Of a stretch of DNA of 64,000 nt, positions 9,801 through 51,800 are shown one piece after another. Origin of the DNA: Perna viridis (taxonomy: Eukaryota); the NCBI GenBank assembly GCA_037379345.1, contig CM074513.1, forward strand, positions 25,730,001 to 25,794,000, given 5' to 3'. The translations under genes and the position numbers were made by a program. A model generated the notes under the pieces. That model was not told where the DNA came from, did no database searches, and worked only from the letters and a program-made list of their open reading frames with translations. The first letter of the stretch is position 1. Each line of letters opens with the position of its first letter.

Positions 9801-12800
9801 CCAACTTATCATTGTGGGGACATAAAAAAAGCATTTACAGCAACTAACATAAATGTCTTCATGAAATAGAGTTGGTCTTCCCCTGACTGAATGACCATTA
9901 CTGAGGATATATATATAAGGTAGTTACTAAATAAGTGACCCGGAGATTTAAACTTTCTATCATTCTGATAGGTATTTTAATTTGTGTCTGGTAGAAAGTT
10001 TAAATTTCTTTTCTGATTGTGCAGCTAACTACCTAAAGCAATTCATAAGAAGACCTTCTATTCTGTGAAGTTATAGCTATGTAAGCCACTATAAAAAGTT
10101 TACCTCAACAAAACCAAAATAATGTAATAATACAACTCAATTTATAATGCAATAACAATAGCTGCTATCTAAAACCATAGATTATCATTTATAATTTAAT
10201 ATCCATGCAAAAATTAAACATCTAAAAAAATTACCTCAACAACACCAAGACGAGAGGTGTAAGCTACAACTGATGAACGGTAGATGAACAAATCAACTTC
10301 AATATCCCTCTTCTGGTTTTTGTCTTTCAAACCATCAATGGATGCTTTCACTGGAATCATTACCATTGTCTTCCAGTTATTGATGGTTATTCTGTATTCA
10401 CATGGATGTTTAGCATCAGATTCATCCCAAACTCCAAACACAGCTTGAGTTATCTCCACTTTTGTTTTTGGGCATTTCCTTTCCTTCTTTATCCTGAGTA
10501 GTTTTGTTTTAATGACAATGTCACAGTATTTTTCTCTGTCATCAGGGAGACAGAAGAGATATGGAGGGACTGTGACGCTAACCTCAATATGACCAGGTAC
10601 CATACCCTCATATACAGTAAGTTTATTTGTCATAATCTGAAATAATAATCAACAAATATTTTAAGCCATTGTGTAGGAGTATCCATAAAGTTAAAGCTTT
10701 GCCTCTTGCACGTGATATATGAACACCATTTACATTTGATTTCAAAATATCTGACTTCTTCTAAAAACAACCAATAATCAAGAAGAAATTAAGTGTAAAT
10801 GGTTCTTTGAAACAGAAAGTAAAAAATTAGGTAATTAGGTACCTTTGAATGAGCCTTGCAAAACAATTTAAATATATCTTAATCTTAACATTAAATACAA
10901 TGAGCATTGAGTTCACCAACATCTCCTTAAAATAACATTTGAACGACAAAAAAAATATTCCAGGAATGTTTCAAATATAATAATAATGTACCTTGATATC
11001 AGCTGTGATGACATTACTTCTCCTCCATGGGGAACAGTCATTATTGGAGGGTCTACAGGCTTGTACATAACAGGATAGCTGTCGATATAAATAAAGAAGA
11101 CATTGTACAAACACTCATGCTGAAAAATAGTAGTAATAGATGAATTTTGAAAAACAGAATTTTTAGAAAGTGGAAATGGGGAAAATTGTGTCAAAGAAAA
11201 AACAACCCCACCAGACTCTAAATCAGCCTAACACAGTGTATGCTTGTTAGTCATGATGCTAAAGTATGAGTGCTAGCCAACTGGCATTACAGATATCACA
11301 GCATTTTTGTATCTGAGATTTTATAAAATGTAACACAGTTAACGAAGTATATTTTAGTGAAAAATAAACTGATATCTTAAAATATTTAACAAAAATTTAA
11401 AACAGGGGGTATAATAAATATGTTGAAATCTCACCTCATCTTTGAAATTCAGTTGTTGAATATCTCTGTCTAATAATTCATCTTCAAACTGATTAGCTGC
11501 TAAGCTTTTCCTTTTAATTGACTGGTCATTAATAGCCCAGTATACAGAATATGACAAACCATCTTCCTCAAGTTTATCAAATTTACAAACAAAGACTGAA
11601 GAAGTTCCATTCCTATCTTCAATATCAACATCAGGCCTTGTTTTGATTTCAGGAGACTGTACAACTACATCAAGGTCTTTTGTCATTTCCTTAGTTCCTT
11701 CAGCCAGGTCCCAACCATCTATGATCATTCTGCAGAATCCACCTGTTTCAATGCGTCTACCCAAATAGAAAAGGCGTGACAGAACAGCAGTGGTTCTGCG
11801 GTAAAACTCAACTGTTCTAGCTACACGTATACCATCAAAGTACAATGACAAACCTCCCTGAATACTCCAGGAGTATTCAATGTTGACAAAAGTGTTCAAA
11901 TATTTCTTAAATGGTACATAAACAGTCCAGATTTTAGTCCTAGTGCTGACGGTCAAATAAAGCCTTTTTCTGGAATACCACATGGACATACCATATTTAC
12001 CTGGGCTATCGCCACCACTGGAAAAAATGTACATCTTTTCCTTCAGTTCCAAAACTTTCAGGTTGAATTTTACTGACAGACCAAATTTGCATTTTTCTGG
12101 ATCTCCAAGGCAACCAGCAGTTTGGTCTCCAAGGTCAACAAAGTCATCAATACCATTCAGCTGTAGGGCCTTTCCTCCAGTTGGACCATTGGTAAATTTT
12201 GGGTTTCCAGACAAAGTGAAGTTGTAAGACTTTGTAATAAGTAAGTTGACAATGATTTGAATGAAGGTGTATCGTCTCACAATAATATCTGTGTTTGTAA
12301 GGATGGACCATGTGATCTTAGACTTGCCAGGAACACACACTTGACTGACATTGGCAATGTCAACAAAGCCAGCAGCATAACATAGCCCACCAATTCTACA
12401 TACATCATTCTGTAAAAAAAAGTTTAAAAATTTAGTTGTTATCATTCATTTTGTGCATGAAAGCATTTCATAATTGCAAAAAAAAAGACTGGCCCCTTAT
12501 TGGATTTAACTCAATTTTATTTTAAAAATTATGAAAAATATAAAAATAAGTTTAGTAGGACTGTATACAAAATAGTTTAAACATGATGGCAACTCACTTT
12601 TTAATTCTCAAAAACTTCTTGTAAACAGTTCAAGAAGGAATGTGAAAGTTGAAAGCTTGAATAACTATGTGCAACTATCTGCAATAGGTAACTACTTTAA
12701 TCTAACATGGCTTCTTAGATACAACTTACCCTGGCTGTACATTTATCTTCAGTACAAACATCACATAGGGAGTCGTACTTGACAAAAGGTTTAGAGTTTC

Positions 12801-27800: not shown

Positions 27801-30800
27801 TTTCTATTTTTTTGGGTGGGGAGATAGTATTCCCCTTTAATAGAAATTTACCATGTCAAAACTATGTAAGTAGAAACGATATGCATATTGCAAAAGTAAT
27901 TTGAAAATTCTAAAAGAAATGTATAACTATGCAGAAATGTTTAAAAAGCTAAGTCGCTATTTTTTTAAAAATAACAGTTAACTTCACAAAACAAACAACA
28001 AACCTCCAACTATCAGTGAATTCATCATCATCTTTCTGCATGTTATCATTAGAACCATCACCATCAAATGATCCACACAAGCCTAAATCATAGAGATAAT
28101 ACTTCCATCACATAAAGGAAAATATTTTGCAGGAAAAATGCTATACTTCCATCATGTAAAGGAAAATATTTTGCAGGAAAAATGCTATACTTCCATCATG
28201 CAAAGGAAAATATTTTGCAGGAAAAATGCTTATCAACACGGCAAAAATTAAAAAAACCTTAATACTGCAACATATGAGTTTTGTTTTTAAAGAATATAAC
28301 TAGAAAAACTATGAGCAAAGCTCCTGTTGAAGAGAAAACTAACAAAAAAGATGCAGACAGACAAACAGACAACTATTATGATCACTATCTACCTCCCACA
28401 AAGTGGGGGAAATAAATATTCACAAAAATTGAGTGGATTATACTAGATATAATAAGTCTTAATTGTAACATATGAAATTCTTTTTACATCAAAAGTTACT
28501 AATTATTATAACTTGCAGATTAACAAAAACTAGCTGTACGTATTGTAATGTACCTTGTGTATTTTTAAAGTCCAATGGTGAAGCTACTAAAACAACCTTG
28601 AGAAAACTGTATGATGGGTGATGGTCATTCCTTGCCAGAATATAGGCTCCAGATGGAAGATTTACCTACAGTAGAAATTATTATTCATAAAAAAAAAAGT
28701 AATTCCAGTCTTGGTCTCAAATGAGAAATAGGGCATTAAAGGAACATTAAGTGATATCCAACCACATAAACTACAAAAAAAGTTTATAACAAATCCACTG
28801 ATCCTTTCTCAAGATATTATTTGGAAACAGTTGAGGAAGGACAGAAGAACAAGCAACTTTCTGGAAGGTATCATGTAATACTTCCGCACTTCATGTGGCA
28901 CTGTATCAAAAGTTAACTCTACCTGTATTTTATGGTAAAAAACAACTATGCAAAGTTTAAAAAAAAAATCATTGATAAAAAATTTTAAAAATCAATTTGT
29001 GTATCTAGCAATCTTAACCTTATAAGCATGTCCATCTTCTATTTGTTCTACACTGGTTCCCTGTGTAAAATCCCCATTATTGTACATGTTAACACCAATA
29101 TACTCCTGGGTGGAGTTAGCATTTGCACCACACCTGTCAATCACAACAACATCATCACCTGACCTGACAGCCATGGCACAGGTACACACAATGTTAGCAT
29201 TGTCACCACACTCACGTCTGAAGATGTGTACCTAGAAATATAAAAGATGGGCCCTTTGAGAAAAAGTTCATTTGTTACATTTAGTTCTATAATGATATTG
29301 TTTCTTTAGTCTTCTTTGTAATTTTAGTCTTATTTCTGATTCTGGGGAACTATGAGGATTTATACATGGAGATTTCAATCTATGTGATAAAAAACATTTA
29401 TATTTCAATGTCATACTGGTAAAGATCATTACACATCAAACAAATGTGGTCTCAAATTGAGACAAATTCATAAGTAATGTGTATGTATAAAAAAAAAAGA
29501 AACAGACCAAAACGTACGAAGAATTTTCACCAAACTAGATAGGTCCCTAGTAATGAAATCAGTAATATATTTTTACATTGACCATGTATATACAATATAT
29601 ATTACACAAGACCTGGTCCCTAAAAAGATTGAAAATTTTACTGAGTTTAAACAGATGTTTTGTTTACCTATTATTGAAGTTGCTTTTTATGCTATGTTTT
29701 GTTTAGAAAATTTCCTGTTCAGATTTGGCAGTTTTTCTTTTTACAACTTATACTGGTAATTACCTCAGCTTTGGGAGTCTTGTATAGAACAAACTCTCCT
29801 GTCTGTTGACTGCTGAAATCCCTGTTTTCAAAAATAAAAAAAAAATAAACATTAAATAGTCAGCACTATATCATGTACAAGAGAATGGGCAAGTCAATAC
29901 CATAGTCATAATTCAGAAAATCATTATTGTTTTTCTGTGGACACCTTTGAACAGCTCACTACAGAGGATACAAAATTTGGAAATTGTTTCACTAGGTCAT
30001 TTTCTTGAAAAGAAATCATGAGACGTGACATGTATGAACATACCTATTGTCAAATGTCCAAGTATGTGCATTGTCAGAATAGCATGTTGCATATCTGTCC
30101 TGGACTGTTACCTAGAATATAGATACAAATACTCATTATAGAATGTACATCCTAACTTCTGGTATTTAGAAACTTTCTTTTTAAAACTGCTTCAGTTCAT
30201 CTGATTAAATATGTCTAAAGCATATTTTCTATTGTTAATATGGTATATATGTTTGTAAATAGGTATTTTCTATATCCAAATGCATACTACTGTTTTTCCA
30301 CTTTCACATAAATGTATTTATCAAGAACCAAAGCTATTTTAAACGAGAACAAGTTTTACTTAAATTACAAAGCAATAGTTATTAGTCCAGTATCATACTC
30401 AATATGGCTCATAGCCAACAAATCATAATTTGAAATATGCTAGAAAATAAACATTTCAAAATGACATTTAGGTTTTACCTTGACACCTTCTTCATCCATG
30501 AACACTTCACTATAGCTCATGTTACCACTGGTTGCTTCAGACTCTATCTCTACAACAGCTGTTTGTTCACCGTCCTTTATAGAATCCATGACAGCAAAGA
30601 CAGAAATTTCCATCTCCTCTCTCCAGTTCTCCATAGTGAACCGGGCATCACAGCTAGATTTTGAGCTTTTTTGTTCCAGAACAATCTGTGGAACATCAAC
30701 CCCACTACAAGTTAAGTCCTGGGTGTTGTTGACCTTGAATCCTACTCTGACCTCACAGTCATCTGCTGTACAGAAAATATTTGGTGGGAAATCAAGTGAA

Positions 30801-33800
30801 AGTTTTATCTCTGCCATCTCTCCTCCTTCTACTAGTTCAAGTTCTTCAGTTACAACCTATCAAAGAGAAATATGAGAATATCAAGTATTCTTAAGATCAT
30901 AGAAGCATTTTAATTTCCTATGAAATCCGTTTCGGATCTTCTACAAATATATCCTTATTTTTATAGCCTATAGAGTGTACCTTGTTTATATTTATTCATT
31001 TGTACAAAATTTGTATAATCAAATATGTGCCAAACCATCTAAAAGTATAACTTAAACTGTTAAAAATTTCACCATTTATTAGTTTTCACCATTTTGTGAT
31101 GAAATGAATATGAAATTTAATATCAGTGAAATTGATTTTATTTTGCAATAAAACCCAATTTATTTTTCAAATTTATGAAAATTTATACCCACAAATATGT
31201 TCATGTGAAGGAATCCACAAAAATAATGTTTACAGTATTTTGGTGAAGATAATTATTCAAAAGTGAAAAAAATTGAAACTCTGTCTTACCTTAACTAAAG
31301 CCTGGATACTGTTGCTAGGGTTCAAAGGGCTGGTAGTGTTACCACAGTCATCACTGTAACACACATAAAGGCCACACTGAACCTGTAAGTAAAAAGGAAG
31401 TCCATTTCTATATCATTTAATGTCAATGACATGCAAGGGCATATAAGTATGAGTCTTAAAATGAACAACATTTCAATGAATAAATGAACAAATATGATTA
31501 ATGAGACCTGGTAGGCAAAGAAAAGTAATAAAGTATCCTATAAAAAATTACTAGAATGCAAATCACAATCAATTAAGGATGCTATGTTTAAGAATAACAA
31601 TGATTTCAAAGAGTTGCAAAATATTTTAAGATCTTTCATGCTAAACTGATGGGACAGTTTTCTTGTTTTGAGATAAAAGCATTTCAAATTTTTAAGAAAA
31701 TTCTCTTGATTTTCTTTCAATTTTGTTTTAGTAGGTTTCATATCTATTAAAAATACCAAAGAAATAATAAGGATTTCATAATAACTTCTCAAAACACATT
31801 GTAAGGTGTGTTTATCAAAATTATGACGAGAAGTGGGGGTCACTAGGCAAAAAAAAAAAACCTAACCAGAGGAGTCGGAAAATCATACAAAAATAAATGA
31901 ATATGAGCAGCAAAACGTCCTTAACCCACTTTTCATCCAATGTTTTCACATGCATTTCATCCTTAACCCACTTTTCATCCAATGTTTTCACATGCATTTC
32001 AACAGATGATAATAATCAAATTATTTATTTTCTCAAATCCAGCCTAAGGAAATAAAATACAGCAAAATGATGTTCTTAGTACCTTTGAACCATATGTGAA
32101 GTTCTTAAGCATCTCGTGATTGATTTTTCTCATTCCTTTCAAATCCATGACATCCATCCATTCACCACCAGATTCCATGGTTCTCCATACAATGGAGTAT
32201 TCTGTATCATTGTCAGTAGGTTTGTCATAGTCACATGTGAGTATCATTTGTTCTGATGTTTTATTATATTGCATCTTTAGGTCTGGTAGTTGTTCCAAGA
32301 TAGGATAGACTACAAATGGATGTCAATGTGTGATGAAAAACACAACACTACAACCACAAACACATACATAATGCAAAAGGTTTTCTTTTTTTTTCATGTA
32401 AGCAATTAAGTAGCACTCCACCTAAGAATCAAGCAAAATGTAATTTATGGTTGGAAAGCTTACATTTTGATATTTTTATAAAAATGTTATAGTAAACAGA
32501 AATTAACATGTGACTTTTCATATAACCCTTGTTCTTAGGAGATAAAAAATAGAATGTACCGTAAATTTCAAAATTAAGGGAGATAACTCTGTAAATGACA
32601 CTTAAGTACAATAGAAACTTGGATTTCCAATGTGGATTATCTCCTACCAGCAGACAGATTGGAATTAATAATTAAACATTTCATCATATAGACCTACAAA
32701 GCAACTTGATATCAAAAATAAAACTGTGTAGCCTTTTTGGGGGTATCACATTTTACAGAATTTGCATGGTTCTTACAACGACTACAGTGGATTCCGCTTA
32801 ATTGCATAGCCTATTTGCCAGTAAAAATTATGCAAATAACCGGGCTATTCTTATAACCGAAATTACGATTTTACCGGAAGTGTGAGTTCAGGTAAGACGA
32901 TGATACTGTGGATCAACCAGGGATATCACTGTTCAACATTTCTGATCTGGTATTTAATTGTTATAGACCTTCTCATTGTATTGTTCTTTTATCAATAAAT
33001 AATAATATATATTGTGTTTGTCTTGTTTATTGACCTTCTTTACGTTGTGTGTATTTATAAGTAAAACCACGTGTTTCTCATCTATAAATAGTCAATTAAT
33101 TTCCTGACCTTTCTACGAAAGCAAATCCCATATTTCATATTTCAGCCAGGATTCAGTGTAATATTCATCAATGTTTGCAGTTTGTGGGCTTTTGAAATGG
33201 TCTGTGTGTTTTTATTCCTCTGTTCATTGTACACTGATAGTTGTGTATTATACGCGTCATTGACCTCGATATATTCCTATGAAGTGTGGATAGTATGGGG
33301 CACCTTAGGGTAGTTGAATTTCATTAGACATTGTACTGAATGAATGACTTTTCGTATAATATTTATTCCTAGTAACCCAAGCTCACTCAAAACTGTTCAG
33401 CTCATTAAAGAAAATTAAATTTACATTGATAATCATTTGTAGTCGGAAGAATTTAAATAGGGAGAAAAAATACCCCAAGCCGAACCTCAAGCCGCATCAT
33501 AAGGTGATGTTCGGCATGTCGTCAGAAGTCATTGTTCACCTAGGTGCTTGTTTATTTTAATGTAATTAGAAATCATTTATATTGTCTTTTATGTCCATGA
33601 TTTTTTTAATCCATTATTAACACCTCCTGATTGATGATAATCTAGTTTTTACAACAATAAAACAATAAATATGATTGACATATTTATGACCCGAAGGCTT
33701 AAAATAGAATTTGGGAAAACCTGTCTTTACCTGGACGAGGCAAAATTCTCTATGCAATAAACCGAAATGCACCTCCAAGGCCTATGCAAATAAGCCATTT

Positions 33801-36800
33801 TTTCCCTAATAGAATAATAGGAAATGGTTTTGTGCAGGAGAAAATTATGCTAATAACCGAAATATGCAATAAAGCGATATGCGATTAAGTGGAGTCGACT
33901 GTACTACTAAAAAATGCCAGGAATGTCAAATTATATTTTAACTATACATCAGACCTTTTTCTGCTACAAAATGACAATCCATATATTAGTCATATCATAT
34001 GAAAATGATTTATATGAATCCAGAATGTTTTTACTTTTATCATAGGTACTACTGATATTCACAATCTGTTTAGATAAATTTGCAACCAAAATTTGTGAAA
34101 CTACAGAGAACCTGTAAAGGTTTACACATCTGGACATGTGATGTTCATATCGCCATAATTCAATTTTGGAACAACAACAAAAATACATGTATTAATTTAT
34201 AAGACTTAATCTGAATGATTATATAAACTCAACAATAGCTGCATTTTCACATGATGACTTACCCTTTGTTAGGCTCCATCTATAGGACTACAAATATAAG
34301 TTTTAGATATAAGTTTTATTTTGTGGGTTCCACATGACTTACCCTTTGTTAGACTCCATCTATAGGACTACAAATATAAGTTTTAGATATAAGTTTTATT
34401 TTGTGGGTTCCACATGACTTACCCTTTGTTAGACTCCATCTATAGGACTACAAATATAAGTTTTAGATATAAGTTTTATTTTGTGGGTTCCACATGACTT
34501 ACCCTTTGTTAGGCTCCACATATTGGACTACAGATTTAAGTTCTGTTTTGTGGGTTCCTCATGACTTACCCTTGTTAATTCCATTCATTGTAGGATTCTA
34601 TAGGACTACAGATATAAATTCTGTTTTGTGGGTTCCTCATGACTTACCCTTTGTGAGACTCCACTCACTGTAGGATTCTATAGGACTACAGATATAAGTT
34701 TTGTTTTGTGGGTTCCTCGTGACTATAGCTGAAATATTGCTGCTCGGACATTAAACCCCAACAAACAAACAATCCTTATGACTTACCCTTTGTAAGACTC
34801 CATTCACTGTAAGATTCTATAGGACTACAGATATAAGTTCTGTTTTGTGGGTTCCTCTCAAGGGCTTCATAACATTTCCAGTCAATAAAACAAGTCTTCT
34901 CCTAAATAATAGAAGACAATATATCATATGATGTTCTACTTTTCTGCATCAACTTTGTATAAAAATTTTAACAACTTATATTTTAATTTACATAAAATGT
35001 ATCATAAGATCATTCAGAAGGCGGCATAACAATTATTTAAAGCTTAAGTTTTCCCAAAAGTCATGTTTATTTCATTATTATGGAATCAATTACAAATCAC
35101 ATTTAAAAATATAACATAGCATACATTTTTTGTTTCTCTTTATATAAATCTACCTACCTTAAAGTCACATTTCCCAGGTATTTTACAGGTGTGACATTCA
35201 TCATCAAAAACTGTAAAGATTTTCTCCTCTGTATACAGATCACCACCATTTGTCACTCGTACAATGTAACTTCCTGTTTTGGGAGTTGGACAGATCACTT
35301 CATTGTAAGTCATAAAAACTGCTTTTACAATTGTTTTGTTCTCACTGACTACCATGTATTCTTCATCAGACAGCTAAAAATAGATGTAATACAAAACATT
35401 CACTAAGACATAGCATGAAATGAAATAAAGACAGACAGACAGACAGTAACAGCTGCTGATTTCAATCTAATATGTAGCCGTGTGAGAAGAAGTTCTGCTT
35501 GCCAAGATATACCAATCAAATACATGTACCAACATAATATATCCAGAATATATTGTAAGTTTTTTTTTTGAGGGACCAAGCAAAAGCCGAGTAATTATGG
35601 AATTTTAAACTTGACAAAAATTACCAAGCAAAAAAGTATTCATTTCACTTCAAATTTGTTATATGGTTATTTGACTACTAGCCCATTCACCTCGATTCTT
35701 TGAAGTTCACATTCTAGGTCATCAGATTTATAGAAGTATTCTCCATACACAACAATCTCATCACAAGATTCCTCAGATATGTCACAGAACCCATCTTTCT
35801 TTAATCTCCATACTTTAGGTGGTTCAGTAATATTGACAGAACAATCTGCACCACCAAAGCCTTGGTCACACACACAATGTCCTGAAAGAAAATACAACAC
35901 AATCTTGGTGGCACATAGAAAAGTTAATTTGTGTTTACAATAAGGTTTAAATTGGTACACAGTTGAAGTTTATTTTCAATTAAGAAAAGTTATACAATTA
36001 GAAAATGTTAACTGTACTGAAACTCATTTTTCATTCCTTCAACAATAAAATCAGGTCTGAGTACCACAATCTACACATTTTTTACCCTGACAATATCATA
36101 AGTTAACATTAACATACCTGGTACTGGGAATTTCCATACTGCAGCTGAATCTCCACTTGACAAGCCTATGTCTGTCACCTTAGTGGACTCTGGGTCTTTC
36201 CACATAGCAATACCCTGAGTATTACCAAGAGTTCCCTCCCCTATTTCAACCACTCCGCCATCCCAACGTAACCAGAATGACTGATACTGATCACAGCCAG
36301 TAGTATTAGCCACAGTCATGGTGAATTTCTCCACACCATCCTGAGATATGGTATACATGGTGTCATTCTCTCCACCAATGGTGATCATTGTAATGTTGTC
36401 TCCCTTCAGAATGATGGAAACGTCTTTACAAGTTTTTGTCATAAATGTGATAAATTGGTTCCTTACTGCCATCTCCACATCTTGAAGCATGGTGTAAGAT
36501 GGTTGTTTAGCTGCTGTTTGAAGCATTTTCTCTGTTAAAAAAATAACCATGAATATAGTAATGTAATCTAAAACTTATCAAAAAGAATGTTTCTAATTAG
36601 CCAACCCCTATCTTGCTTTCTGTGAAAATGACAGATAAAATTAGACCAGAATATCATTATTTGTTTACTGGATGCTTTTTTCAGAGGAAGGATTACATTT
36701 TTTAATTTTTCATTCTCATTATAATTTTTAAATACTTTGATTTCATCAATCATTTTGCACAACAGAATCATCCATGCCAGTTTCATTAAAAGTGAAGAAA

Positions 36801-39800
36801 CATCATTAATTCAGGACTGCACATAGTTGGCTTGTTATGCAAGCTATTTGATATGAATGATCCTGATACTTCAAAGTATTAAAGGAAAAGAAAAGTATCA
36901 GTGATCAACTGAATAAAAGTCTTAATTTGTAAAATTGATTGTAAGTTATGACGTCCTAGTCAATAATATCATTGTGACTTCATTAATTATGATTAATTTT
37001 ACATTTCTGACCTCTTGTAAAATTAACAACTGACTTATTCAGAATGCTGTTTAGACAAGTCTCATTTCTTATACATCCCAGATGAATCAAGTTTTCTTAC
37101 ATACCATATTGGCACATGCCATGCTCTCCACATTGATTATAACAGAACTGCTGAGCTTTGCTATAGTCGGACCATAGTGCTACAGTCCTCTGGATCTGTA
37201 TGGCACATTTCTGCTTCAGTGTCGTAAGAGAAAGTTTGGCAGCGTCTAAATCATCCAGTATCTGGAAAATATAAGTCAAAACTTATATTAAAACATATAT
37301 ACCTACTTAGGATATGAATACAGGTTCAACTAGCTTGTAAAGAGCCAAAAGAGAATTAACATACAAATTACTTCTTTGCTCATATCTATCCTGTCATGCT
37401 TGTACATATTTTTTTGTAGATACTCAAGTTTTGACATGTGGATTCTCCTCCAGTAATGAAAGGTTCAAATTATTTCTCCACTTGAGATGATAAACTTAAA
37501 TATTTCAACATGTAAATTTTAGAAAGCTTACTTAAATCTTAGTGTAACCATAGAGAGGGGGACTTAGTTTAAATCAAGAATAGGATTACAGAGAATCAGT
37601 TTTCTTCATGAAATCCGTAGAAAACTGGGAAAATCTAAAATGGTGGGAAACCTCTCCAGAAAATTTATTCACAGCTCTGTGGTTAAAAAGTCATGTGAAT
37701 TTTTAATCACGAATTCAGAATAAGAGAACATATAATAACCATTTATATATGATTCAATCACGGGTAATTAACAATAACAATTAACTACAAATCACATACT
37801 AGTAGCATTAAAGAAGACACAACACATATGAATATTTTAGATGGCCTGAGATCTTCATTTTTATAGACACATTATTTAAACTTTCAAGTAAAACTATGTT
37901 TATTTTCAGAAATTGTAATTTGAAAAATGAGTAAGATTTCAAAACAGTTGATAATGACCTGAATGTTTTCTATACATCTCTGTGTAATCTGAGCCAGCTG
38001 TACATTAGGTATATCTTTACACATTTGCCCCTCTGTACCATTAGTTATAACTGCTTCACAGGCCTTACTGGCATCCTCTTGTGTGATATTAGATGGAGTT
38101 GGAAAATCAGTTCCCTGTCAAAATGTCATAGATCATTAGTAAAATTAGTAAATGAGCTGTGATACTTCCTTCTAATGTTTTTTATTCACAATAATTAAAT
38201 GTACATTTTCAAAAGCCACTTTGGAAAAACTTTTAAAATTTTAATCATGTTAAGTCCTGGAACTTTAAACAGAAACAAAATAGTTTGGTTTGAAGGAAGG
38301 TTTATAAGACAGAATTGCATGAATCTTTGCAGTATTATTTGGAGGTATTGTAAGTTTATTGAATCTATGCAAAAGTAACAAAATGACTTTACCTCAGCTT
38401 TAAAATCAGCATCAAACTCAAACTGGTACATTTCATCACCACAATACATGGGCTTGGATGATCTTTTCTCTAAATCATCATTTATTTCATCTGTAAAAGA
38501 TACATCTGTTCATATCCTTAAGAAATCTATGCTACACAACTGTAAGAAATTCATTTTGTGAAAATATTTAAGCAATTAATTTTATAATTTTAATATATAA
38601 CTTCAAACATTTTCAATGTCTATGCATTATTTTCTTAAAACTGGCCCCTCAATATAGAATTGCAAAATAAATGCACAGTAAGGGGTGACTTCTCCTAGTG
38701 TATAAAAGAACGACTTTATGACCTTGACTATCCACTGAAATGTTCAACCTTGAAAATTATTGGTTCTACATTTTCATAAGGACATAAAAGTACCAAGTTT
38801 TGTTAAAATCTGTTGAAGATTGGTGATTCAAGTTTTGTAAAAATCAGTTAAAATTTTGTTAAAATCAATACAAGGTTGTTTAAAAGGATATTACAGACAG
38901 ACCGACTTAAGAAAGAGGATACAAAGGTGATTTGTACTCAAATTACTTTATCCATATCATATTACGTGTGACTGAAAGGGGACCTTGTTCTATAACCTAC
39001 CAAACTGTTGTCCAATAAGGGAGCACTGTCCTCTGATTTGGTCACTATCACACTCCCCATCCTGTTTACCTGGACAAGTACAATAAACCATGGACTCCAT
39101 GTCAGCCATATTAGTACATAGACCTGTCAGTAAACTCTGGTTCCTTGGAACTCTGCAAGTAAACAAAACCATAATTATATAGAATTAATCATATCTTCAT
39201 TAACTGATATTTATCCTTCGAAAGATGATTCCAAAATACCACCCACTTGTTAATTGAGGTTATGATTAAGAACTTTATCTTTTTTAATAAGGCAACACAA
39301 ATAAGAGATATCCTTAAAAAGATTGGGATGGGGTTTTGAGCCAAACAAGTTATTTAAGCTAAGATTGGAATTATATAAAGTTAAACAAATTACCTCCAAG
39401 AGTTGGAGAACTTTTCTTTCAGTAGCCCAGGTACTTCATACAGCTGTCCGTCAGCCATCATAAGGTCATTACTCCTCATGCCATCAAACATTCCACATAG
39501 TCCTTTAGTACTAGAAAGGTCATTAACTGACCCTTGAACCCACACATTTAGATATGGCATGGATGTCGTCATAGCAACCATAGCAGTTACCATGGTTCCA
39601 GATGGTAATGTTACCTAGTGTATCAAAGGAAAATATTTAGATAAAAGAAAAAAAATCATAAAGGTCCTGTTCTATTTCAAATTCAGTATGACAATAGGAA
39701 CAATAAGCAATATATTCTATGTTCTCACTACAACAGGTGGAGCTGAGGAACAGCTGGTAACTGGGCAATATAGCTTGTCTACTTCTCTTCGAAACATTAC

Positions 39801-42800
39801 GATTAAGTATAAACCAGTATTCTAAAAGAAATTAAAAAAAAACAATATTGCAACAAATTTTATAACACTATTGTCATAATACTGGTATACATGTACCAGT
39901 ATTGTGATCACTTAATACAGGAAATCTCAATATTGTACATATATGAAAATGTATATAAACTAGTCTAAGGTAGAAAAAAACTCACCTTGAATACTTTCCC
40001 ATCTACTGCCCTGTAGATATCTGTTCCATCAGCCATATCTTTATTTTTGTACATCTTGACCATAAGGGGCCATGGTTTTGTTGGATTGGCCTTAGGGCCA
40101 CATAAATCAATGACAACAACAGTACCAGCTGATCGAATGGCTACAGTGCACACTCTGGATGCTTTATCCATGTACCTTCTGTAGAATGCTTGAACCTATA
40201 AGCATAATAAAATTCATATATGTATTCAGCTCCCCATTAATAGCTCCATTATCAACTAGTTCTTTATAAAAAAAATCTCAGCTTGTATGTTTTAAAAACA
40301 GAAAATGTGTATACCACCTCAATACCCAGTATTCCAGAGTTAAAATATTTTGAGTACTGACCACATTAAACTTTTTTATTATAGTTACAAATCAAACCTT
40401 TGCAACTGAATCACTGCAGAAAAAAATATATACTTAAATGCAGCCTTAAATAATGTTATTACCTCATAAGGTTTAGTTACATGCTTGTATAAAATAAAAT
40501 TTCCTTCCAGGAAATTATTCAGTTGGCTGAAAGAAGAAAACATTTATAAATAGATATGGATATTTGATACCATAAAATTAACAAATGTGTTGTGGTTTTT
40601 GTGTAATTGTTAATATCATATAAACTTAGTTGCAAATCCTTAAATATCTTCTATATTTAGAATATCTCATTGTTGGGTTTATAAAATGAAAACTACAAAC
40701 ATTATGAATCAATGCATTTGATAAATGCAAAATCCTTACAATCCCAGCAAATGTACAGGTATTTTCTATCATAGCATCTCCCTTTGTAACATAAAATAAA
40801 AAGTTTTACCTTCCATCAAATGTAGAAACATGTCCGAGATTAACAGATTCACAGAAGGAAACGTGGTCTTGGTCTTCAACATAGGCCTGAAAGTATACAT
40901 TAAAATTTCTAGAATGAATAATTAGAATTTTTGGTTCCATTCCTTAATTTCAAATTGAATGACTGTCTATGGTAAACTCAGGCAAGAGCAGTGGACTGAT
41001 TAAACAATAACATGCATGGGCCACAGAATGAAACAAATACCTCTGCCTTCAAGTTCAGATATATTATTCTTTTCTTTTATAACACAAGAAATAATCTTCA
41101 AAATAATCCTCTAATCAATTCATAATCTCTTGGGCATAGGGATTAAAAATGCTATATTTACCTCAACTGTGAAGAAGTGATGTTCTGGAGCTGAGACTGA
41201 ACCAGATGTAATAATTCCAGAGACCTCAACTTCTCTTGTCTGATCACCATCCATCAATCCATCAACTTTAGCAGACACTGAAAATTCAAATTCTTTGTCC
41301 CAATTCTCATTAGTTATCTCAATGTCACATGACTTTCCTCCATCTTTAGCCATTGGTCCAACAACAAGCTGAGAAGCTTTACCACTGACACAGTAATCTC
41401 CATAACGTTCAATGACAGTCTTAGTTTTCAGCTTGATTTGACAATTATCTTTGGTGTCATCAAGGCCACAGAAGAAACTAGGTGGTGACATTGCTCTGAA
41501 TTTGATAGTCTCACTGTCTCCTCCTTCAGTGATATTAATTTGTTGCCCTGAGATTAACTGTAAAAAATAATGTAGCTCGGAAATCATTTTGAAATATTTC
41601 TGTTCATTTCCAACAATTTCTATTCCAGTAATGTTTATTTACTGAACATAAGCACAGTAAGTCTAGTATCCACTTGATTATCAAAGAAACATGTATCGTC
41701 ATAAACAATAATAGCTAAATATTGAAATTGATTGGATATTGTAAGAGATACTCAGTTTATAGTGGCATTCACTAATTCCTAGTTCAAGTATTTTAAATCA
41801 TTAGAACTTTACACATGATGCTCTACATATTTCTAATATGACTTTCAACTGACCTTGATATTAGCCTCTATCTCATTACTCTGTCTGAATGGTCCTGTAG
41901 TCTGATTACATATGTCCTGGAGACATGTTACAACACCACAATGGATCTGAAATAAAATATCAGCAAGTATTCATTGAAAATTCCTTTTTCTGACTTAAAC
42001 AGCAACTCAAAGAAACTTAAATTAAGAAATTTTTATGACAAAGGTTTTTTTTAAAACAAATTTTCGTTCTGCCTTACATAAACCTCTCTACCCACCTTAG
42101 TTCCAAACTTCAGATCAGCCACATGTTTCCTGTCCAGTAGCACTTTGATTTCTTTTGTTGTATCATTGAGGACTTTGGTGTCAATTACAACTGAGTCCTT
42201 TACCCAATAGACATGGTACTCTAAGGTGTCATTCGAGTCCTGTACCGTTGAGAATTCACATGACAGTGTCAAGTTACCGTCCATTGTTTTGTCTGTGACC
42301 TCTACCTCTGGGTTGCTAGGAACCAATGGGAAATCTCCTTCTATAAAACAATTAGCGAAAACATAGAATTATCTGATTTATTGAATTTTTAACCATCATC
42401 TTAACCAATCAAAAAGACTGCATAAAACATATTATAAAACTTGATCTTTTACTTTCTCAAATCATTATAGACAAACATATATACTACAAACCTTTGTCAC
42501 AAGTCCAATCCTCATACACATATCCAGGATATCGGACAAATTGTCCCATGTAATCAGCAGCTACAGACTTAGACAAATAACAGATTCCTAGAGCTGGGAT
42601 GATCTCAAATGATCGGCAGATAAAGTCTGTCTCCTGTAAACACAGTCTACGACATTCTGTCTGGTAGTTCACATTTGAAATCTCTTTGTCATTATGCTCC
42701 AGTAAGGAGTATCCAGAATGTCTGGTCCAAGTAATACCTCTCTTTCCACATGGGTCTGGAAATTGGAAAAATTAGAATAATGTGAGTCAGGAACAAGTTA

Positions 42801-45800
42801 CATTAAAACACATACATGTAACTTATATTAGTGTTTTGGACTGTCCCACAGTATACTTTTAAAGATGTAAAATTAAAATGCTTTATCTTAAAATAAACAT
42901 TGATTATTTAAATCGTAACTCAACTCAATTAGAGTTCAATTAAAGTTCAGATGTAAATTAAGGAACTATTGCAATGTGTTCATTATTTGGAAAAATGTGA
43001 CTGAAAATCAATATCTCAAAAATGAGTAATATCATAGAATTCTTAACAACAGTAATATGGAATAATTCTCAAAAACACAAAAAGAATGAAATTAAAGTTT
43101 TTACTAAAATGATAAAATTAAATTTATGAATTACTGCATGCTATTTCTGAATTTACTTTATTTTTTCCACAGTACCTCCACTGCAGCATTGGTAATTTTT
43201 GTGTGTAATTAGTCCTGGTATCTTTTTTAAGGTAATGGTAGAAAATATCTTAGTACATTTTCTGCTTTGAGGAGGCCAAAATAAAAACATAATAAAAACC
43301 TACTGTTAACACAAAGCCATTCCTGGTGATCAAAGTTCTGATTCTCTGACATTTCAACACTGCCTGAGAAAGAATCACCAGTAAACAGGGAACAGTTCTG
43401 TGTGACAGTCTCAAGGTCAAATCCATCACATACTGGAGCTTCCATTTGAGCCAAGCAGGCACCTCTACATGTGGATACATCACCGTTGCTAGGGATTGTT
43501 GATATGGCATTACCCATTACAGCCTGGTTTTTCTGTTCATACCAAGCAATATCCAAAATTCCACAAGAATCTTTTCAAGAAAAGCAATAAAATTAAACAA
43601 TATTAGCAAAAGCACATTGAAATTCATATGAAATAACACACAGAAAATAATTTATCATAGTAAGTTATCCTGATAGAAAAAAACATTTTGAAAACAGATA
43701 AATTTTGGTATTGAAGATACTTTTGTTTGAGCAAACAAGGTGTCCTTATCAGTTGCTTTTGATTTTGAACTACCTTATAAAAAAAACTGTATACTCTTTT
43801 GAGGTAGATACAACCTCTTTTCATTTGTCCTATTTTGTTAAAGCGTTTGTATCCTGTATCGATTCCAAGGTTTAAATCCAAATTTAACAGATTTTTATAG
43901 TTTTTTTTCATTGTATTTTCCCACCACTGTACCTGGTTAGGGGAGGTTTAACCCTGCTATATACTTTATGTGTCTGTCCCAAGCCAGGAACCTGTTGCCC
44001 CGCTATATACTTTATGTGTCTGTCCCAAGCCAGAAACCTGTTGCCCCGCTATATACTTTATGTGTCTGTCCCAAGCCAGGAACCTGTTGTCCCGCTATAT
44101 ACTTTATGTGTCTGTCCCAAACCAGAAAACTGTTGTCCCAATATATACTTTATGTGTCTGTCCCAAGCCAGGAACCTGTTGTCCAGTGGTTGTTATTCTT
44201 TTTTATGTTGTTGTTTTTTTTCTTTCTACATTTTTTCTATAGAACAGTCAATTTTCTTCCTTTATGAATAGTTTCACTTCATTTATTTTGGGGCCTTTCA
44301 CAGCTTGCTTTTTATGTTATGTGTTTTGTCCATCGCAGAAGATCGTGTGGTGACCTGTAGAAGTTTAATTGTTCATTGCCTGACTTTTGGTGGACGACTC
44401 CATCATTGGCAATCATACCACATCCCCTATTTTTAATATTGCTCAATACTAAATGAACAGAGTAAATCAGGCATAATTCTAATTGTGAAAATAACTTTTA
44501 AAAAATTATAGGAGATTTAAGCCAATACCCTGGTTTCTTTCAGACAGTCTAGTTGTTAATGAATAAATATTTGGGCAAATTCAAGTTTTGCCTATTACAC
44601 TCGCCAGTGTTCAGTTAATTTAAAATCATTATGGACGTCCACATGCATGAACAACATTTTGATTCTAAATTTTCATCTTAATATAAATAAACATGTATTG
44701 TATGCACTTGTGAATCCATGTTTGAGTTAATGCATACCATCAGCTGTTTGCCACTGTGTATAGTTGGTTTTAGGATCACAATATTGGTGTATATTGTTTG
44801 GGTTAAATTCTCCAGGTTCATAACACACATTATCTATCAGACAGGCACTAGTCTGGAAATACATGTAAAAATAATATCAGTAAGTGAAGGAAAACTAGAA
44901 TTGATTGACAAAAAATGAAAAAAACAATGTGTTCCGCATCCAGGGTGCTCATTTACTTTTGTTCATTGTTATTTTATGTTCTTTGTTGTGTGTCATTCTC
45001 TTTATCTTGTTGTTATCCCTGGATTGTGTTCTTTCTTTCTTAACATATCAATCCAAGTTCCCTTGATTTCCACCAAAAACTTCAGTTGAGGAGCCAAACA
45101 TCAATATGATAGCAATATTATTGTTTAAATCAGAGACATAGTCTTATGGAGAAACAATGTTTTTCATTTCAGAAAAGAAGAGCAGTGGTAATTTTTCAAC
45201 AAACTTTGGTTGCACAATGTAATTGCAAAAGCAAATTTGCATACTAGAAAGACAACTGTGCATAACTCCTGTAAATAAACACTCTTCAAAAAGCTAGGCT
45301 TGTGTATTCAAGTTATCAAAAATAAAAGCTAAAAGTTTAATGATGAATTGCATAGAACTACTTGTACAAAGACAAACCATGCCTACAGATTGTAAGCTTG
45401 AGCTCAATGTTATTGAGGAGAAAACATGTCTAAAAATTAGAGACTGCTATCAGAGATCATTATTTCCTTAGTAAGTAATAAAAACATATTACTGATAATC
45501 AATTTCACCGTGTAACTGTTAATTCCAGGGGCGGATCCAGGATTTCAGTTTAGGGGGGCATTGATTGAATTAAATGCCGTGCAAAGCAAGGCAGAAAAAT
45601 ATTATGAGGTGAAACTTGTGGTGAAAATTTTTTTTCTTACTGATTTAGGGAGCGTACGCCCAGCATGCCAGTCCTTGGATCCGCGCCTGAATTCTATATA
45701 CCAATACATTTAACTTCATCAAGAATGAATACAGACTTATTCAAAGTTATAAAAAATGGAATATGGAATATATACATATTTCAGTTCATGCATTTGTGAA

Positions 45801-48800
45801 TAATTTTAGTACACACTGATTTATGTTATAAAATCAATTTATTATGTGAAGCATTCATAATGTCAAAGCATGTGATTAAGCATTAAAAATCACACTGACA
45901 ACACAATTCTTTTATTTTGCTTTAAACAGGTCAATTCAAAATTATCATTTGAAACGAGATGCAATACAATGTACTATAATTGTTAATTGATTATCTACAA
46001 CAAATGATTTTTTATCTGACCAAAATATTGGACTTTAAATTAATACGGCTCTGTAACCAAAAAGCTTTTGTTAAGCAAGATCTTTTGCTGATTTGTAGCT
46101 GCATGCAAAATTACTTTCAATGAATCAATGACCATTACAAACAATGTTACATTAAAATCCATGATTTTAATTGACATGAATATAAATACATGTAGCTGCC
46201 AAGTGAAGTCAAAATTACCTGTATGGTTGACTGTAAACAAAAAGAAGGATTACTATGTAATTGGAAATTATCTATCAAGAAAAAGCAATGGACAAAAAGG
46301 AACTAATAAAAATAAATGTGTATACTATAAGTGAAGTATAAAGAAATATATTTGCTAATAGAATATCAATAGGTAGTTGAAATAAAGTACAATCTACAAA
46401 ATTGAAAGTACTGCCATGACAACTGAAAAATAAGTAAAATAGGAAACTAGAACTTTCAAATTATTACAGGTGAAAAAAATAACAAGTGTTTTATCAAAGG
46501 TAGACATGTCTTTCACAGAACAGAGACCATATGACTATTCCTTACCTTTTCTGTACAGGTGAGAGTTTCTACATTACAGGTGAAACACAGAGAATCGTAG
46601 ACCATGTAGCTAGCAGGTTGACTGACTATCTCTCCTGTGTTGCTATTACTGATTTTAATCTTGTAACTACCTTTAGATGGAGGTAAACATTCTAATTCAT
46701 TGTATGTGACAAATGTAGCGTTTACTCTGACATCCCCTCCAACTTCTTGGAATGTATTACCACTTTGCTGTAAAAACAGACTTAAGGTTAGGAATTTCTT
46801 TGATTGCAAGATGGCATATATAATGAATACAATGATACTTTGTTTTGATTCTATGGTACTTCTCTTTAATGAACAATGTTGTTTTGATTCTATGATACTT
46901 CTCTTTAATGAACAATGTTGTTTTGATTCTATGATACTTCTCTTTAATGAACAATGTGGAATGACTGAGATTCAAGATGTTTATTTCCATTTAAGCAAGC
47001 CGGGCTGACTTGCTTTTGAAATCAGAACCAAATGAATGAATGACAGTCCTGATATCATTGGGAATTTGTCAGACCCTCTAAACTGACGTTATCTTCCATG
47101 TATCAATTTAATCCAATGGAACAGTGTAGCAAATAAGAGTTGTCACATTTTGAGACGTATACTGTCAATGTATTAATATTCACGACAGCTAATTTTTGCG
47201 GTTTTGAAAAGTCGACATTTTCGTGGATATTAATTTTCGCAGTTCTTAAGGTTGAAGAAATTAAGTTTTTCAATAGTCTCGGCATTGTGTGATCTCTCAT
47301 TTGATCAGTTATTTTACCATTAATATTTCAATGAAATTAATGACGGCCATTAATACGACAATAACAAATTGATGAGTCCACATAGTTTCCTATGGCCATT
47401 TTAATCTAACATTGTATTCTATTTAAAACTAAAAAAGAACTCACTTAATTGCCCAAGCCGCAGCTAATTGTAGGGATTAACTTTTGACACTTTAATTGCA
47501 TGTTTACGCATCAACTTTTACCTGAAAGTTATCAGCGTGTGTAAAATGGAATATTTTATCGGTAGCATGTGTTTAATTCTAACATTTTGTTCTTTTTATG
47601 AATAAAAAGCTTGTACAGTATTGATTTCTATTCATTGTACTGTATGGCCATTGATACAAATATGTAAACAAGATCATGAATTTAGAAATTATAACTCACG
47701 TGCTTTTACCATATATGTTTTTGTAATAGACTTAGTATAAGTTCATACTTGATTGCATTGAATAATACGATCCTTACTCAAAAACGACATTTCTATTTAA
47801 AATTGTGGAAACCATGATTAGAACAGTCAAAAGACATAGTAATATGAATATTTTTTCGCTGGTTCTAATTTTCGCGTGCTTGACTCAACAGCGAAAAAGT
47901 GAAAATTAGTACACCATGAAAATTAATACGTTGACAGTATATATATCAACAACTGTAAAAAAAAAATTATTTTGATTTCAGTAAGATATACACTTCAACA
48001 GTACCTCTAGTTTAGTAAAATAGCAGCTGAGAGTGTCCAAATCAATAATTTTTGATGTAAAAAGATTGATGACATCACATGTACTAGTTCTGAGATCACA
48101 AAGTCCATCCCCATCTATAAATAGTATCTTTGGAACATCTGTGTCACTGATGCCACAATCTACTCCTAGTTGACCGGTGTCACACTGGCAGACTCCTGAA
48201 AAACATCAATCAATAAGGAATCCCTGATAACTTTCCATTATGCAAAATCTATCAAAAAATTTACATAATTCTTGCTGTTTTAATTGTTTAATTGCCTAAA
48301 AAAAGAATGAGGTCACTTTTTACATTGTTTGTTGCCATAAAAAGGAAGGAACTATTTTTTTTATCTAATTGATATGGCAGTAAATATTGGTAATGAAGCA
48401 TCCTCAAAATAGATTAAGGAGAGAATCTGAACCAAGAAACAAACTTAACATGGCCTACACATGAAGATAATAATGGTAAAGAAATGAAATTCACATTCTT
48501 TAATATTTAAACATATAAAGAAATAAAATTAAAGCTCCTTCATCAACCAAATATTTTTGACTACCTTGCACTACCTCAAATCTTTCTAATACTTAAGTAC
48601 CAGTCCACATAAAATTCAGACACTGCCGATTCATGGGTCAGAAAAACCCACCAAACAAACAATGCTTTTTTTAGTCTACATATGCTATACTTTCACATAA
48701 CAACCATCTTTTCTGCATTAAAATCTGCACTTTTAAGAAAATCATATATTCATCTCAATCTGAAATCAACCAAATCAAGCCAAATCAAGAACGATAACTC

Positions 48801-51800
48801 TTCTACAGTGTAAATTTCATGTACAATCTGTATGATTTTTATCTCAAAAGTGCATCAACCTAATAAAAAACTAAGACTGGTTATGTGATCGGTAACTGTT
48901 TCTGAACAAGAAATAAAACTGAATTTGGTGGGTTTTTAACATGCATAAATCACCTTCTGTCTGATTTTTATAAAGACTGCTACTTAATTAACCTAACAAA
49001 AAAACAAATTCATTACAATTCATGGAATAATGATAACGTACCATCTACGCACTTTCCTGCATTTGTACAATCAGCAAGACACAACTGTCCAAGAATTTCC
49101 TCAGGTGGGCCTGGATTTGGGCATGTTTGAGTGGCTGTTGTCCATGTACTCATGTTGTAAGGTAACAGTATCTGTGCTTGCTGTTTCATGTTTTCTATCA
49201 CAGTTTGATACCATAGGGAGGAGTCAGTTATCTGATGCCAAATTTAAATATTCAAATTACCAGTACATATACATCATAGATTGCATAAAAAATGAAAATA
49301 AATCACAAGTACATTCAGGCAACTCCCATTATTGTTTCAATAATACTTATTTAGTTTATATTCTATTTGAATGCATTAAAGCACATAATGAAATGTGGGA
49401 AAAAAGAATTAATCATAAACAATGAAACTACAAAATGATTCCTTTTTAAGGCTTATAAAATAATAATTGACAGGATGAAATGTTAACCAAAATGTAACTT
49501 TTTGGGAACATAAATTTGACATCCCCAAGTAGAAACAAATCTTTTTTTCCTTTGAGAATAAAATAACTGAAGACAAAAGAGACAGTCGTGAAAAAAGTTT
49601 GCTGCATATGGTTCCAATGGAATCATTGTCTTACCTGTATGTCCTGTACACAGTTCTGGAAAGCCTCATCAAACATGACACCTGGAACAGTCTTCAGTAT
49701 TTTATAAGAAGAAGATAAGCGAACCTGATTGCATTGGTATATAGCCTGCGGCTCACTCAATCCTCCATCAGATGGCCACTTGGGAAGCTACATTGTACAG
49801 CATTGTAAAAGCAAGTGCTTATTGATACTTATTAAAATACACTTATACAGAGAGAAGATATGCTAGTGCCTAAATCAATACATGTAGATAGTGAAGTCTT
49901 ACATACTACATTTCTTTGTCATTGAATGGACACATATTTCTCTATTTTAGTTCTTGAATATAATATCATTAATTCATTCTTTGTCATAACACAGTTGTTA
50001 CACCTGGAAAAACCATAAAGGACTGCAATCGACAAAAATAGAATGATCTAAAGCATGTTAAGATGGCTACTACATCTGATGCAGCATTCAATATAAACTT
50101 ACAGGTTCAGAGTGACTGGCGTCATATTCAAAGTCAGGGTACTGGAATTGTCCCACATCAGATGTACATTTTGTTGGAAACAATGACTTGTTAACTAGAT
50201 TCTGTGTGATATCAACACTACCTGTAATACACAAATTACTTGTTTATTAAAAATACAAATTGCAAATGAAATGGAAATTTAACAATGGGATGACTTAATC
50301 ATTACTAATTATTTCTCCAACATAATGATTGCAATCCAGTAATTTGGTCTAAAATTACTTATTGTTGTGTTTGAGGTTATGGTTATAATTCTTACAAGTT
50401 TAGTCAGCTAAAACCATGACTGTAATTATTGTTTTTTGCAGTATAAGATTTTCAACTTATTTTTAAGTAGCAGTCTTTGTAAGAATCATGAAAATTCTGT
50501 AAAATTTTATACACCCCAAAAAAGGCTACACATTTTTATTTTTGTTATTAAGTTGCTTTATAGGTCTGTATGATGAAATGTATAATTATTCATTCCAATC
50601 TGTGTGCTCTTAGAAGATAATCCACATTGAAAATCCAACAGTTTCTATTGCATTTCAGTGTCATTCACAGATTTATCTCTCTTAATTTTGAATTATACAG
50701 TGCATTCTACATAATATTTATTTCTTATGAAAAAGGGTTCTATTAAAAGCTACATAATATTTTCCGTTTACTTAAGCAAGTTAAACAAAATATCAAAAAT
50801 AAAAATATGCAGGCTTTCCAACCAGGTATCACACTTTGCATGATTCTTAGCTGGAATGCTACTTAAGTACAAATAACTATCATCGCCTTCCACTTACCAT
50901 CATTTTCAAAAGGGCAGGTAATTCTGTCAAACTGTTCTCCACAAGTCTGATTTTCCTTACAGAAACAGAAGGAATCAGGTTTAGAGTTCTTGAGGTCTGC
51001 TAATGGACAGACTCCAGTGTACAAAGTCTCTGCTTGTTGAACTCTACAAACAAACACAGAAATTTAGGATGAGAAGACTTGTTTTTTTTCCTATAACAAG
51101 AATAAAAAAAAAACAAAATCCAGGGAAGTAAGTACTTCAACTGAAATCTTAAATTTATTTATCAATAAAAACTGAAAGAAATATAATATTAGGAAGCCAT
51201 TTGCCTTAAATGGATTTCATGTCATTAACCATTTTTGTTAAATTTGATTTACAATAAATTCATCTGTGGGAGCCATCAAAAGACAGTCCAAATATTTGTG
51301 ATATTATTGGTCAAACAGTTCAAGGATTGGCAAAGAATGCCTTGTTTTACCACAAATGCTAGAAGTTTTCTTTCAAAAATATCTGAGGAGTTCCAATCAA
51401 ATAACATATGGGTCTTCCAAACGTTTTGTCCAGCAGGTGTTTTGAGTACATTTCAAAGCTTTTACTTGACAAATGTTTCTAAAGTGGACAATATGATAAA
51501 TTTTTAGACAAATTTCAATACATTTCAGTGCAAGTTTTACTCACTTCTTTAATTTAATATACCTCAACAATTTGCTATTTTAAGTTTGTTCACCTCATAA
51601 AAATTGCAATATTATCTGTAATGAACTATACACTTACCTCCAACTAAGAGAAAATGTTTCAGCTCGGGTGTTTACAATCTTGCCTAAGACACCATCAGAA
51701 CCCATGATGTCATCTGAAGGATCATCATTAAAGTTTCCACACAAACCTACAAAGAAAAAAAAACAATGAGAAATCTATAGAACTATGACCACCTAAACAG

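Follow-up and report, generated by a model that had tools for sequence, protein, structure and literature searches.

A FAMeT-like domain exon within the EGF domain of one module of a giant VWDE-like gene of Perna viridis

Introduction

In laminins, a beta-sandwich of CBM35-like fold and unknown function, called L4 or domain IV, lies between Cys3 and Cys4 of a laminin-type EGF-like (LE) domain (PMC5338690). The split LE domain is expected to fold around its insert, and perlecan domain III is built in the same way (PMC5338690). In this study, we analysed a similar arrangement in 64,000 nucleotides of DNA from Perna viridis (GenBank assembly GCA_037379345.1, contig CM074513.1, forward-strand positions 25,730,001 to 25,794,000), hereafter the window. 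A single gene of repeated VWD and EGF modules occupies it, and the EGF domain of the third module is divided by an intron that contains an entire exon for a FAMeT-like domain. We consider it probable that a complete FAMeT-like domain of 138 residues, gained through exon shuffling, stands between Cys3 and Cys4 of this EGF, and that the two EGF halves are still paired.

The laminin precedent and the present locus share the position of the insert and its broad fold class, a CBM-like beta-sandwich (about 140-200 residues in laminin and perlecan; PMC5338690) between Cys3 and Cys4, but not the family of the insert, the subtype of the EGF or the host protein. Here the insert belongs to PF12248 rather than to laminin B/L4, and no sequence relation between the two was found; hence, the locus is an analogue of the laminin system and not a member of it. 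The host is a six-cysteine EGF of the tenascin type in a VWDE-like protein, not an eight-cysteine LE domain, and the insert occupies one of at least nine otherwise uninterrupted modules. Moreover, the footprint of the exon can still be recognised here, as a 1-1 exon within a phase-1 intron that was there before it.

FAMeT domains have been described together with EGF-like domains in the sea star Asterias rubens, in the footprint proteins (Sfps) Sfp1, Sfp3, Sfp4a, Sfp5, Sfp7 and Sfp8, and Sfp1, whose domains are comparable to those of Sfp2, adds vWD-type domains to this set (PMC9382459). Like the protein studied here, the Sfps are secreted, cysteine-rich and multi-domain. The text consulted does not state that a FAMeT domain lies inside an EGF, gives no indication of orthology and leaves the function of FAMeT unknown there too (PMC9382459). 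A preliminary description of the window, made from its letters only, had stated this link of FAMeT with EGF and vWD in sea star footprint proteins correctly. FAMeT domains also occur in mollusc shell-related proteins, again with unknown function (PMC8194122). Our literature searches on FAMeT with EGF in molluscs and on VWDE in mussels returned no description of a FAMeT domain inside an EGF.

According to Patthy's rule for class 1-1 shuffling, a symmetrical phase-1 exon encoding a whole domain enters a phase-1 intron, and the locus follows this rule. However, the recipient intron here is intradomain, at the tip of the EGF hairpin, and not at a domain boundary, so that the resulting architecture is nested rather than serial. 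The preliminary description had held that shuffling does not normally put domains inside a disulfide knot. This was overstated, given that L4 lies between Cys3 and Cys4 of LE (PMC5338690).

Results

Anatomy of the exon and the split EGF domain

The features of module 3 are as follows; X1, X2, X17 and X18 are RNA runs, described in the next section.

39393..39614, minus strand: exon with the C-terminal end of the module 3 VWD domain (GLCG...D motif); Pfam VWD, E 7.9e-6
37959..38116, minus strand: upstream exon of module 3, joined to the exon with EGF half A; RNA joint 37261|37959 in X1, X2/X17 and X18
37105..37261, minus strand: exon ending with EGF half A (Cys1-Cys3, then base 1 of a Gly codon); sequence, and RNA joints on both sides
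36532..37104, minus strand: intron of 573 nt, GT-AG, phase 1; RNA joint skipping 573 nt in four runs
36118..36531, minus strand: inserted FAMeT-like exon of 414 nt, phase 1-1, PF12248, predicted ConA/galectin-like beta-sandwich; Pfam, AlphaFold2, fold matches and RNA inclusion
35882..36117, minus strand: intron of 236 nt, GT-AG, phase 1; RNA joint skipping 236 nt in X1, X2 and X17
35691..35881, minus strand: exon that opens with EGF half B (G-H-Cys4-V-Cys5-...-Cys6) and runs on into the next domain with Cys residues; sequence, a weak EGF_Teneurin match and RNA joints
35157..35373, minus strand: next downstream exon of module 3; RNA joints, and paralogous exons in other modules
34787..34900, minus strand: following exon, whose donor at 34787 joins the exon that starts at 32309; RNA, with a 21-nt loose end mapping to 32289-32309

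Read on the minus strand, exon 37261-37105 ends in C-Y-N-Q-C-G-E-H-G-M-C-Q-Y plus a single G, and the donor gtatgt that follows splits a Gly codon behind its first base, that is, in phase 1. The inserted exon has the acceptor ttttaacag, is open throughout, ends in CCA G|gtatgt and is in phase 1 at both ends. Exon 35881-35691 follows the acceptor ttctttcag, and its first bases, (G)GA CAT TGT, complete the Gly codon. EGF half B then reads G-H-C-V-C-D-Q-G-F-G-G-A-D-C-S. Hence, the EGF retains its six cysteines, with three before and three after the 138-codon insert, and, as with L4 in LE, the insert falls between Cys3 and Cys4 of an EGF-like domain. It also has the anatomy of a class 1-1 shuffled module, with a whole domain on one exon of phase 1 at both ends lying within a phase-1 intron.

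Without the insert, the EGF of module 3 has the spacing C-x3-C-x5-C-x4-C-x-C-x8-C and a G-[FWY]-x-G motif, which is the tenascin/teneurin type, and its halves keep all consensus positions of the other five modules of the window. Searched alone, half B gave a weak EGF_Teneurin match (E 0.007, 16.9 bits against a cut-off of 24.3). Skipping of the exon would yield C-Q-Y-G-H-C-V-C in frame. In all these respects, the coordinates, phases and peptide given in the preliminary description, on the minus-strand reading, were correct, as was its count of the cysteines kept around the insert.

Inclusion of the exon in RNA

RNA contigs were mapped to window positions 34000-38300. Single contigs follow the spliced path 38116-37959, 37261-37105, 36531-36118, 35881-35691, 35373-35157 and 34900-34787; the contig with the full path in X1 (study P1) is 3069 nt long, and the same path is found in X2 (P2). 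The contigs of X17 (P8) are identical to those of X2 and were counted with them as one data set, which leaves three independent studies in total. The third of these, X18 (P9), contributes the 37105|36531 joint, whose shorter flank measures 33 nt, and another contig that lies within the exon. All the joints along the path (37261|37959, 37105|36531, 36118|35881, 35691|35373 and 35157|34900) are GT-AG; the 36118|35881 joint is present in X1 and X2/X17 and was not seen in X18. The inserted exon is therefore real, and in mature RNA it is joined to the EGF half-exon on either side. The skipping joint 37105|35881 is not listed among the spliced contigs of the three independent studies. Of the two outcomes that the preliminary description had set against each other at these junctions, inclusion was thus found on both sides of the exon, although assembled contigs could miss a rare skipped isoform. 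In addition, RNA-like public runs contain 0.30-0.42 of the words sampled from the 1571-nt stretch, a share consistent with the presence of three exons (762 of 1571 nt) and not of two.

A 48-nt piece at 34720-34772, shortly downstream of exon 34900-34787, is matched by a very large number of RNA contigs of high depth (about 30,000-50,000 when summed), with one or two mismatches. It has the look of a short repeat that is common in other transcripts. The module 3 mRNA contig itself uses the donor at 34787, joining to 32309.

The recipient intron across paralogous modules

The six modules of the window all have a phase-1 intron at the same Gly codon (6/6); the donor follows base 1 of the codon, and the acceptor comes just before G[A/T]-x-C4. 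This codon follows C3-x-x, with two extra residues in module 4 (C3-x-x-x-x), and its first base is A instead of G in module 6. A search of the genome with the EGF half-B exon returned 33 places. Nine of these, including that of the query, fall within C3:25689076-25790473 on one contig and one strand; the sixth module of the window fell below threshold in this search. We examined 20 of the 33 places, two of them being further modules of the gene that contains module 3. Half A could be recognised in 17, and in 17/17 the intron follows the third residue past Cys3, in most cases a Gly.

These paralogous EGF introns are about 230-1900 nt long, and by eye no domain-like open reading frame was seen in those of the 17 modules with a recognised half A. 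None of the 32 FAMeT-like places of the genome overlaps another VWDE-like module. Hence, among the six modules of the window and 17 other modules, only module 3 has an insert-bearing EGF intron. To judge from the sequence, the recipient phase-1 intron is old and general, and the insert is unique to module 3. The preliminary description had claimed both the intron in every module and the restriction of the exon to module 3, and each claim was borne out, the second also against the 17 modules elsewhere (by eye).

The EGF intron of module 9 of the same gene (locus L019, C3:25688876-25695252, reverse) is about 1.2 kb long. At positions 4780-4889 of this locus, some 45 nt after the real half A, there is a second copy of EGF half A, decayed and with a stop codon in frame; the end of the exon seems to have been duplicated locally.

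Identity and predicted fold of the inserted domain

The product of the inserted exon matched Pfam PF12248 (Methyltransf_FA) over profile positions 13-136 of 140, with an E-value of 2.1e-12 and a score of 47.4 bits, above the curated cut-off of 24.2, as the preliminary description had anticipated. This was its sole above-threshold Pfam match; the scan gave no laminin B/L4 match to the exon. HMMER found 267 relatives among 1.84 billion representative proteins, and 63 of these were used for a family alignment. Residues W86, W89, G97, G99 and W132, invariant or near-invariant in that alignment, are kept in the exon product. Its only two cysteines, C34 and C79 (an even number), stand at family consensus Cys positions, and both are kept in the counterpart from contig L013 described below.

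AlphaFold2, run on the exon product alone with the 63-sequence alignment, predicted an all-beta sandwich of 11 strands (predicted local distance difference test, pLDDT, 92.6; predicted template modelling score, pTM, 0.87), in which no Rossmann-type S-adenosylmethionine (SAM)-binding fold was found. In Foldseek and VIA-align comparisons, the whole model matched lectin/glucanase jelly rolls of the concanavalin A (ConA) type. The best-described structural matches were CBM66 (Z 12.3, root-mean-square deviation 2.8 Å over 125 residues), galectin carbohydrate-recognition domains, matched over the full length (Z 10-12), and GH16 glucanases, circular permutants included. A sequence search of the PDB with the family profile found no solved relative, the best hit being a CBM32 at E 0.27. 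The predicted fold argues for a lectin-like binding or structural module and not for a methyltransferase. The family name Methyltransf_FA is historical, so that the lack of a SAM-binding fold in the model speaks against an enzyme and not against family membership.

The first strand of the model comprises residues 2-5 and the last one residues 130-133; the jelly roll would thus begin two residues past one junction and finish four residues short of the other. Jelly rolls of the galectin and ConA type have their two termini side by side, which is why circular permutants fold. This is also the geometry that a domain needs if it is to be inserted into a hairpin turn.

Origin and age of the exon

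There are at least 32 FAMeT-like exons in the genome. We examined 12 FAMeT loci (L001-L012, the exon of the window among them), and found a phase-1 acceptor close to where the open frame begins in 10/12 and a phase-1 donor directly past the terminal W-x-F motif in 8/12. The FAMeT-like exons of this genome thus appear to be mostly single phase 1-1 exons. It is known that class 1-1 modules move by intronic recombination. Because the FAMeT domain exists here as a class 1-1 module and a phase-1 intron is a compatible recipient, the anatomy points to classical exon shuffling, and the inserted exon looks as if it had been derived in this way. The best paralogue of the exon is only 28% identical, which indicates no recent donor.

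FAMeT-like tandem arrays of single-exon-sized open reading frames were seen in other invertebrate assemblies (L035, ENA contig ctg33071l; L034, GCA_000328365.1, KB295566.1), and one of the two arrays adjoins an open reading frame with a MAM domain. Such arrays fit the picture of a mobile 1-1 module. The contigs of proteins P0071 and P0061 were considered as orthologues and rejected, since they hold unrelated FAMeT arrays or genes.

A counterpart of the exon from another organism was found in a 1282-nt ENA metagenome contig (L013), the source of protein P0005, which is 57% identical over the matched part. The counterpart exon is complete, with 417 nt, the acceptor tcag, the donor G|gtaaac and the same phases, and shares 50% amino-acid identity with ours over 137 aligned codons. 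Identity at the three codon positions is 64%, 72% and 35%. The nonsynonymous divergence (dN) is 0.43 and the synonymous divergence (dS) is saturated, so that only dN and the codon-position identities are usable and no dN/dS is given. The same phases together with saturated synonymous sites indicate that the exon is old and under purifying selection. The flanks of the exon in L013, 82 nt upstream and 780 nt downstream, are too short to include EGF halves.

A metagenome scan with the two-species alignment gave no further match. None of the 267 FAMeT-like proteins from the representative search is a full-length protein of this gene, and a regular-expression search for tenascin-type EGF halves around the FAMeT domain found 0 in the best 150 of the 267. 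Finally, a word-based protein search with the exon returned only the window's own open reading frame; it was length-filtered, with longer annotated proteins outside its scope.

The host gene

One giant minus-strand gene fills the window (185-63592) and extends over C3:25689076-25790473. It comprises at least nine modules: six VWD+EGF modules, each some 11-12 kb in length, lie in the window, and three or more follow downstream. The open reading frames contain VWD motifs, a starting CxxxNDPHxxTFDG-type motif and also GLCG..D..D. PF00094 (VWD) matched exon 39393-39614 at 26.7 bits against a cut-off of 22.9 (E 7.9e-6), with weaker matches in modules 1 and 5. The protein context is secreted, rich in N-glycosylation sequons, Cys-rich and extracellular. 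From these domains and motifs, the host is best described as a giant multi-module secreted VWD+EGF (VWDE-like) protein.

As in the VWDE family, VWD is followed here by a tenascin-type EGF, and exon 32044-32298 gave a weak Ig_VWDE signal (PF25776, E 0.012, 15.9 bits), below the cut-off of 28.1. Unlike in that family, there are at least nine tandem modules, and their accessory domains vary among PAN, FAMeT-like and, as a lead only, LamG_3-like. Modules 1 and 2 have a PAN domain behind the EGF (58771-58445 and 42771-42487). In modules 4-6, the EGF is followed by a domain of about 230 residues (22564-21872, within 12445-11357, and 841-185), which the ESM Atlas groups with LamG_3/ConA-like proteins. 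Module 3 has neither a PAN nor a LamG_3-like domain, and its mRNA runs directly from 34787 to the exon starting at 32309, the one with the weak Ig_VWDE signal. Altogether, the modules differ in their accessory domain, and that of module 3 sits inside the EGF and not after it.

In module 5, a single open frame of 363 codons (11357-12445) covers three exons of module 4 (22918-22766, 22564-21872 and 21516-21175), which agrees with an exact double intron loss. Tandem repeats in introns, at 43888-44268 and 28087-28300, have several open frames on each strand and are probably non-coding.

Discussion

The results of our study fit the following course of events. An old phase-1 intron in a Gly codon at the tip of the Cys3-Cys4 hairpin would have been common to the VWDE-like EGFs of this genome. 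One 1-1 FAMeT module exon may then have landed in the EGF intron of module 3 and been retained. The EGF halves would still pair around the insert, with disulfides 1-3, 2-4 and 5-6, and the jelly roll, its termini side by side, would project from the hairpin tip as a lectin-like binding module, much as L4 does from LE. Of the two options considered in the preliminary description, an insertion or a cassette exon, a whole FAMeT-like domain in the Cys3-Cys4 turn is the one supported by sequence and RNA.

Several points weigh against this reading. The pairing of the EGF halves and the disulfide pattern across the insert are inferred. Assembled contigs drop minor isoforms and carry no information on tissue or level, and the conservation in L013 concerns the exon and not the nesting itself. 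Moreover, we know of no ligand for any FAMeT-like domain.

The alternative that survives best, although we regard it as rather unlikely, is compatible with a nested domain: the exon could be a regulated cassette, perhaps by tissue or stage, that switches between a plain EGF (C-Q-Y-G-H-C) and a lectin-displaying one. Skipping preserves the frame and rebuilds a perfect EGF, symmetrical exons are the usual substrate of cassette splicing, and contigs cannot show that a minor isoform is absent. However, the exon is included in all spliced contigs of the three independent studies, with the skipping joint absent from their list, and all four splice sites look strong.

We give somewhat less weight to the idea that the EGF has been functionally destroyed, its halves surviving only as Cys-containing linkers that flank the FAMeT domain. 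In its favour, a tenascin-type EGF has only four residues from Cys3 to Cys4. Yet both halves keep C-x3-C-x3-G-x-C and G-x-C-x-C-x2-G-F-x-G-x-D-C like the five uninterrupted modules, even though the insertion would be old; the cysteine count is still even, and laminin L4 in LE shows that the topology is viable (PMC5338690).

A catalytic farnesoic acid O-methyltransferase tethered to a matrix protein is highly improbable, as nothing beyond the Pfam family name favours it. The predicted ConA/galectin-like fold has no Rossmann-type SAM-binding domain and the protein is secreted, sequon-rich and extracellular, and on these grounds the enzyme reading was rejected. Finally, a separate nested transcript, an unspliced intronic pseudo-exon or an annotation artefact, the first of which the preliminary description had named as a threat to its reading, has nothing in its favour beyond the intronic position and is practically ruled out by single spliced contigs that run through all six exons from 38116 to 34787.

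In module 3, exon shuffling appears to have placed one domain in the midst of another; the case is real, has the laminins as a textbook precedent and reveals no new principle. It is also a clean natural case in which the gene still reveals the mechanism of nested insertion: at least 23 paralogous modules (six in the window and 17 elsewhere) share a phase-1 intron that predates the insert, and in only one of them does this intron contain a 1-1 domain exon. More speculatively, and at rather long odds, intradomain phase-1 introns at EGF hairpin tips might be a general docking site for 1-1 exons, with lectin-like domains nested independently in laminin/perlecan and here, and the exon might in addition be a regulated cassette.

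A disulfide-knotted EGF of 30 residues apparently tolerates a 138-residue jelly roll at the Cys3-Cys4 turn, the very place where laminins carry L4. This may be of use to protein engineers who graft binding domains into EGF scaffolds, and annotation pipelines would otherwise call two broken EGFs at such a locus. Altogether, our results add evidence that the FAMeT domains of marine invertebrate matrix and adhesive proteins are lectin-like folds rather than enzymes.

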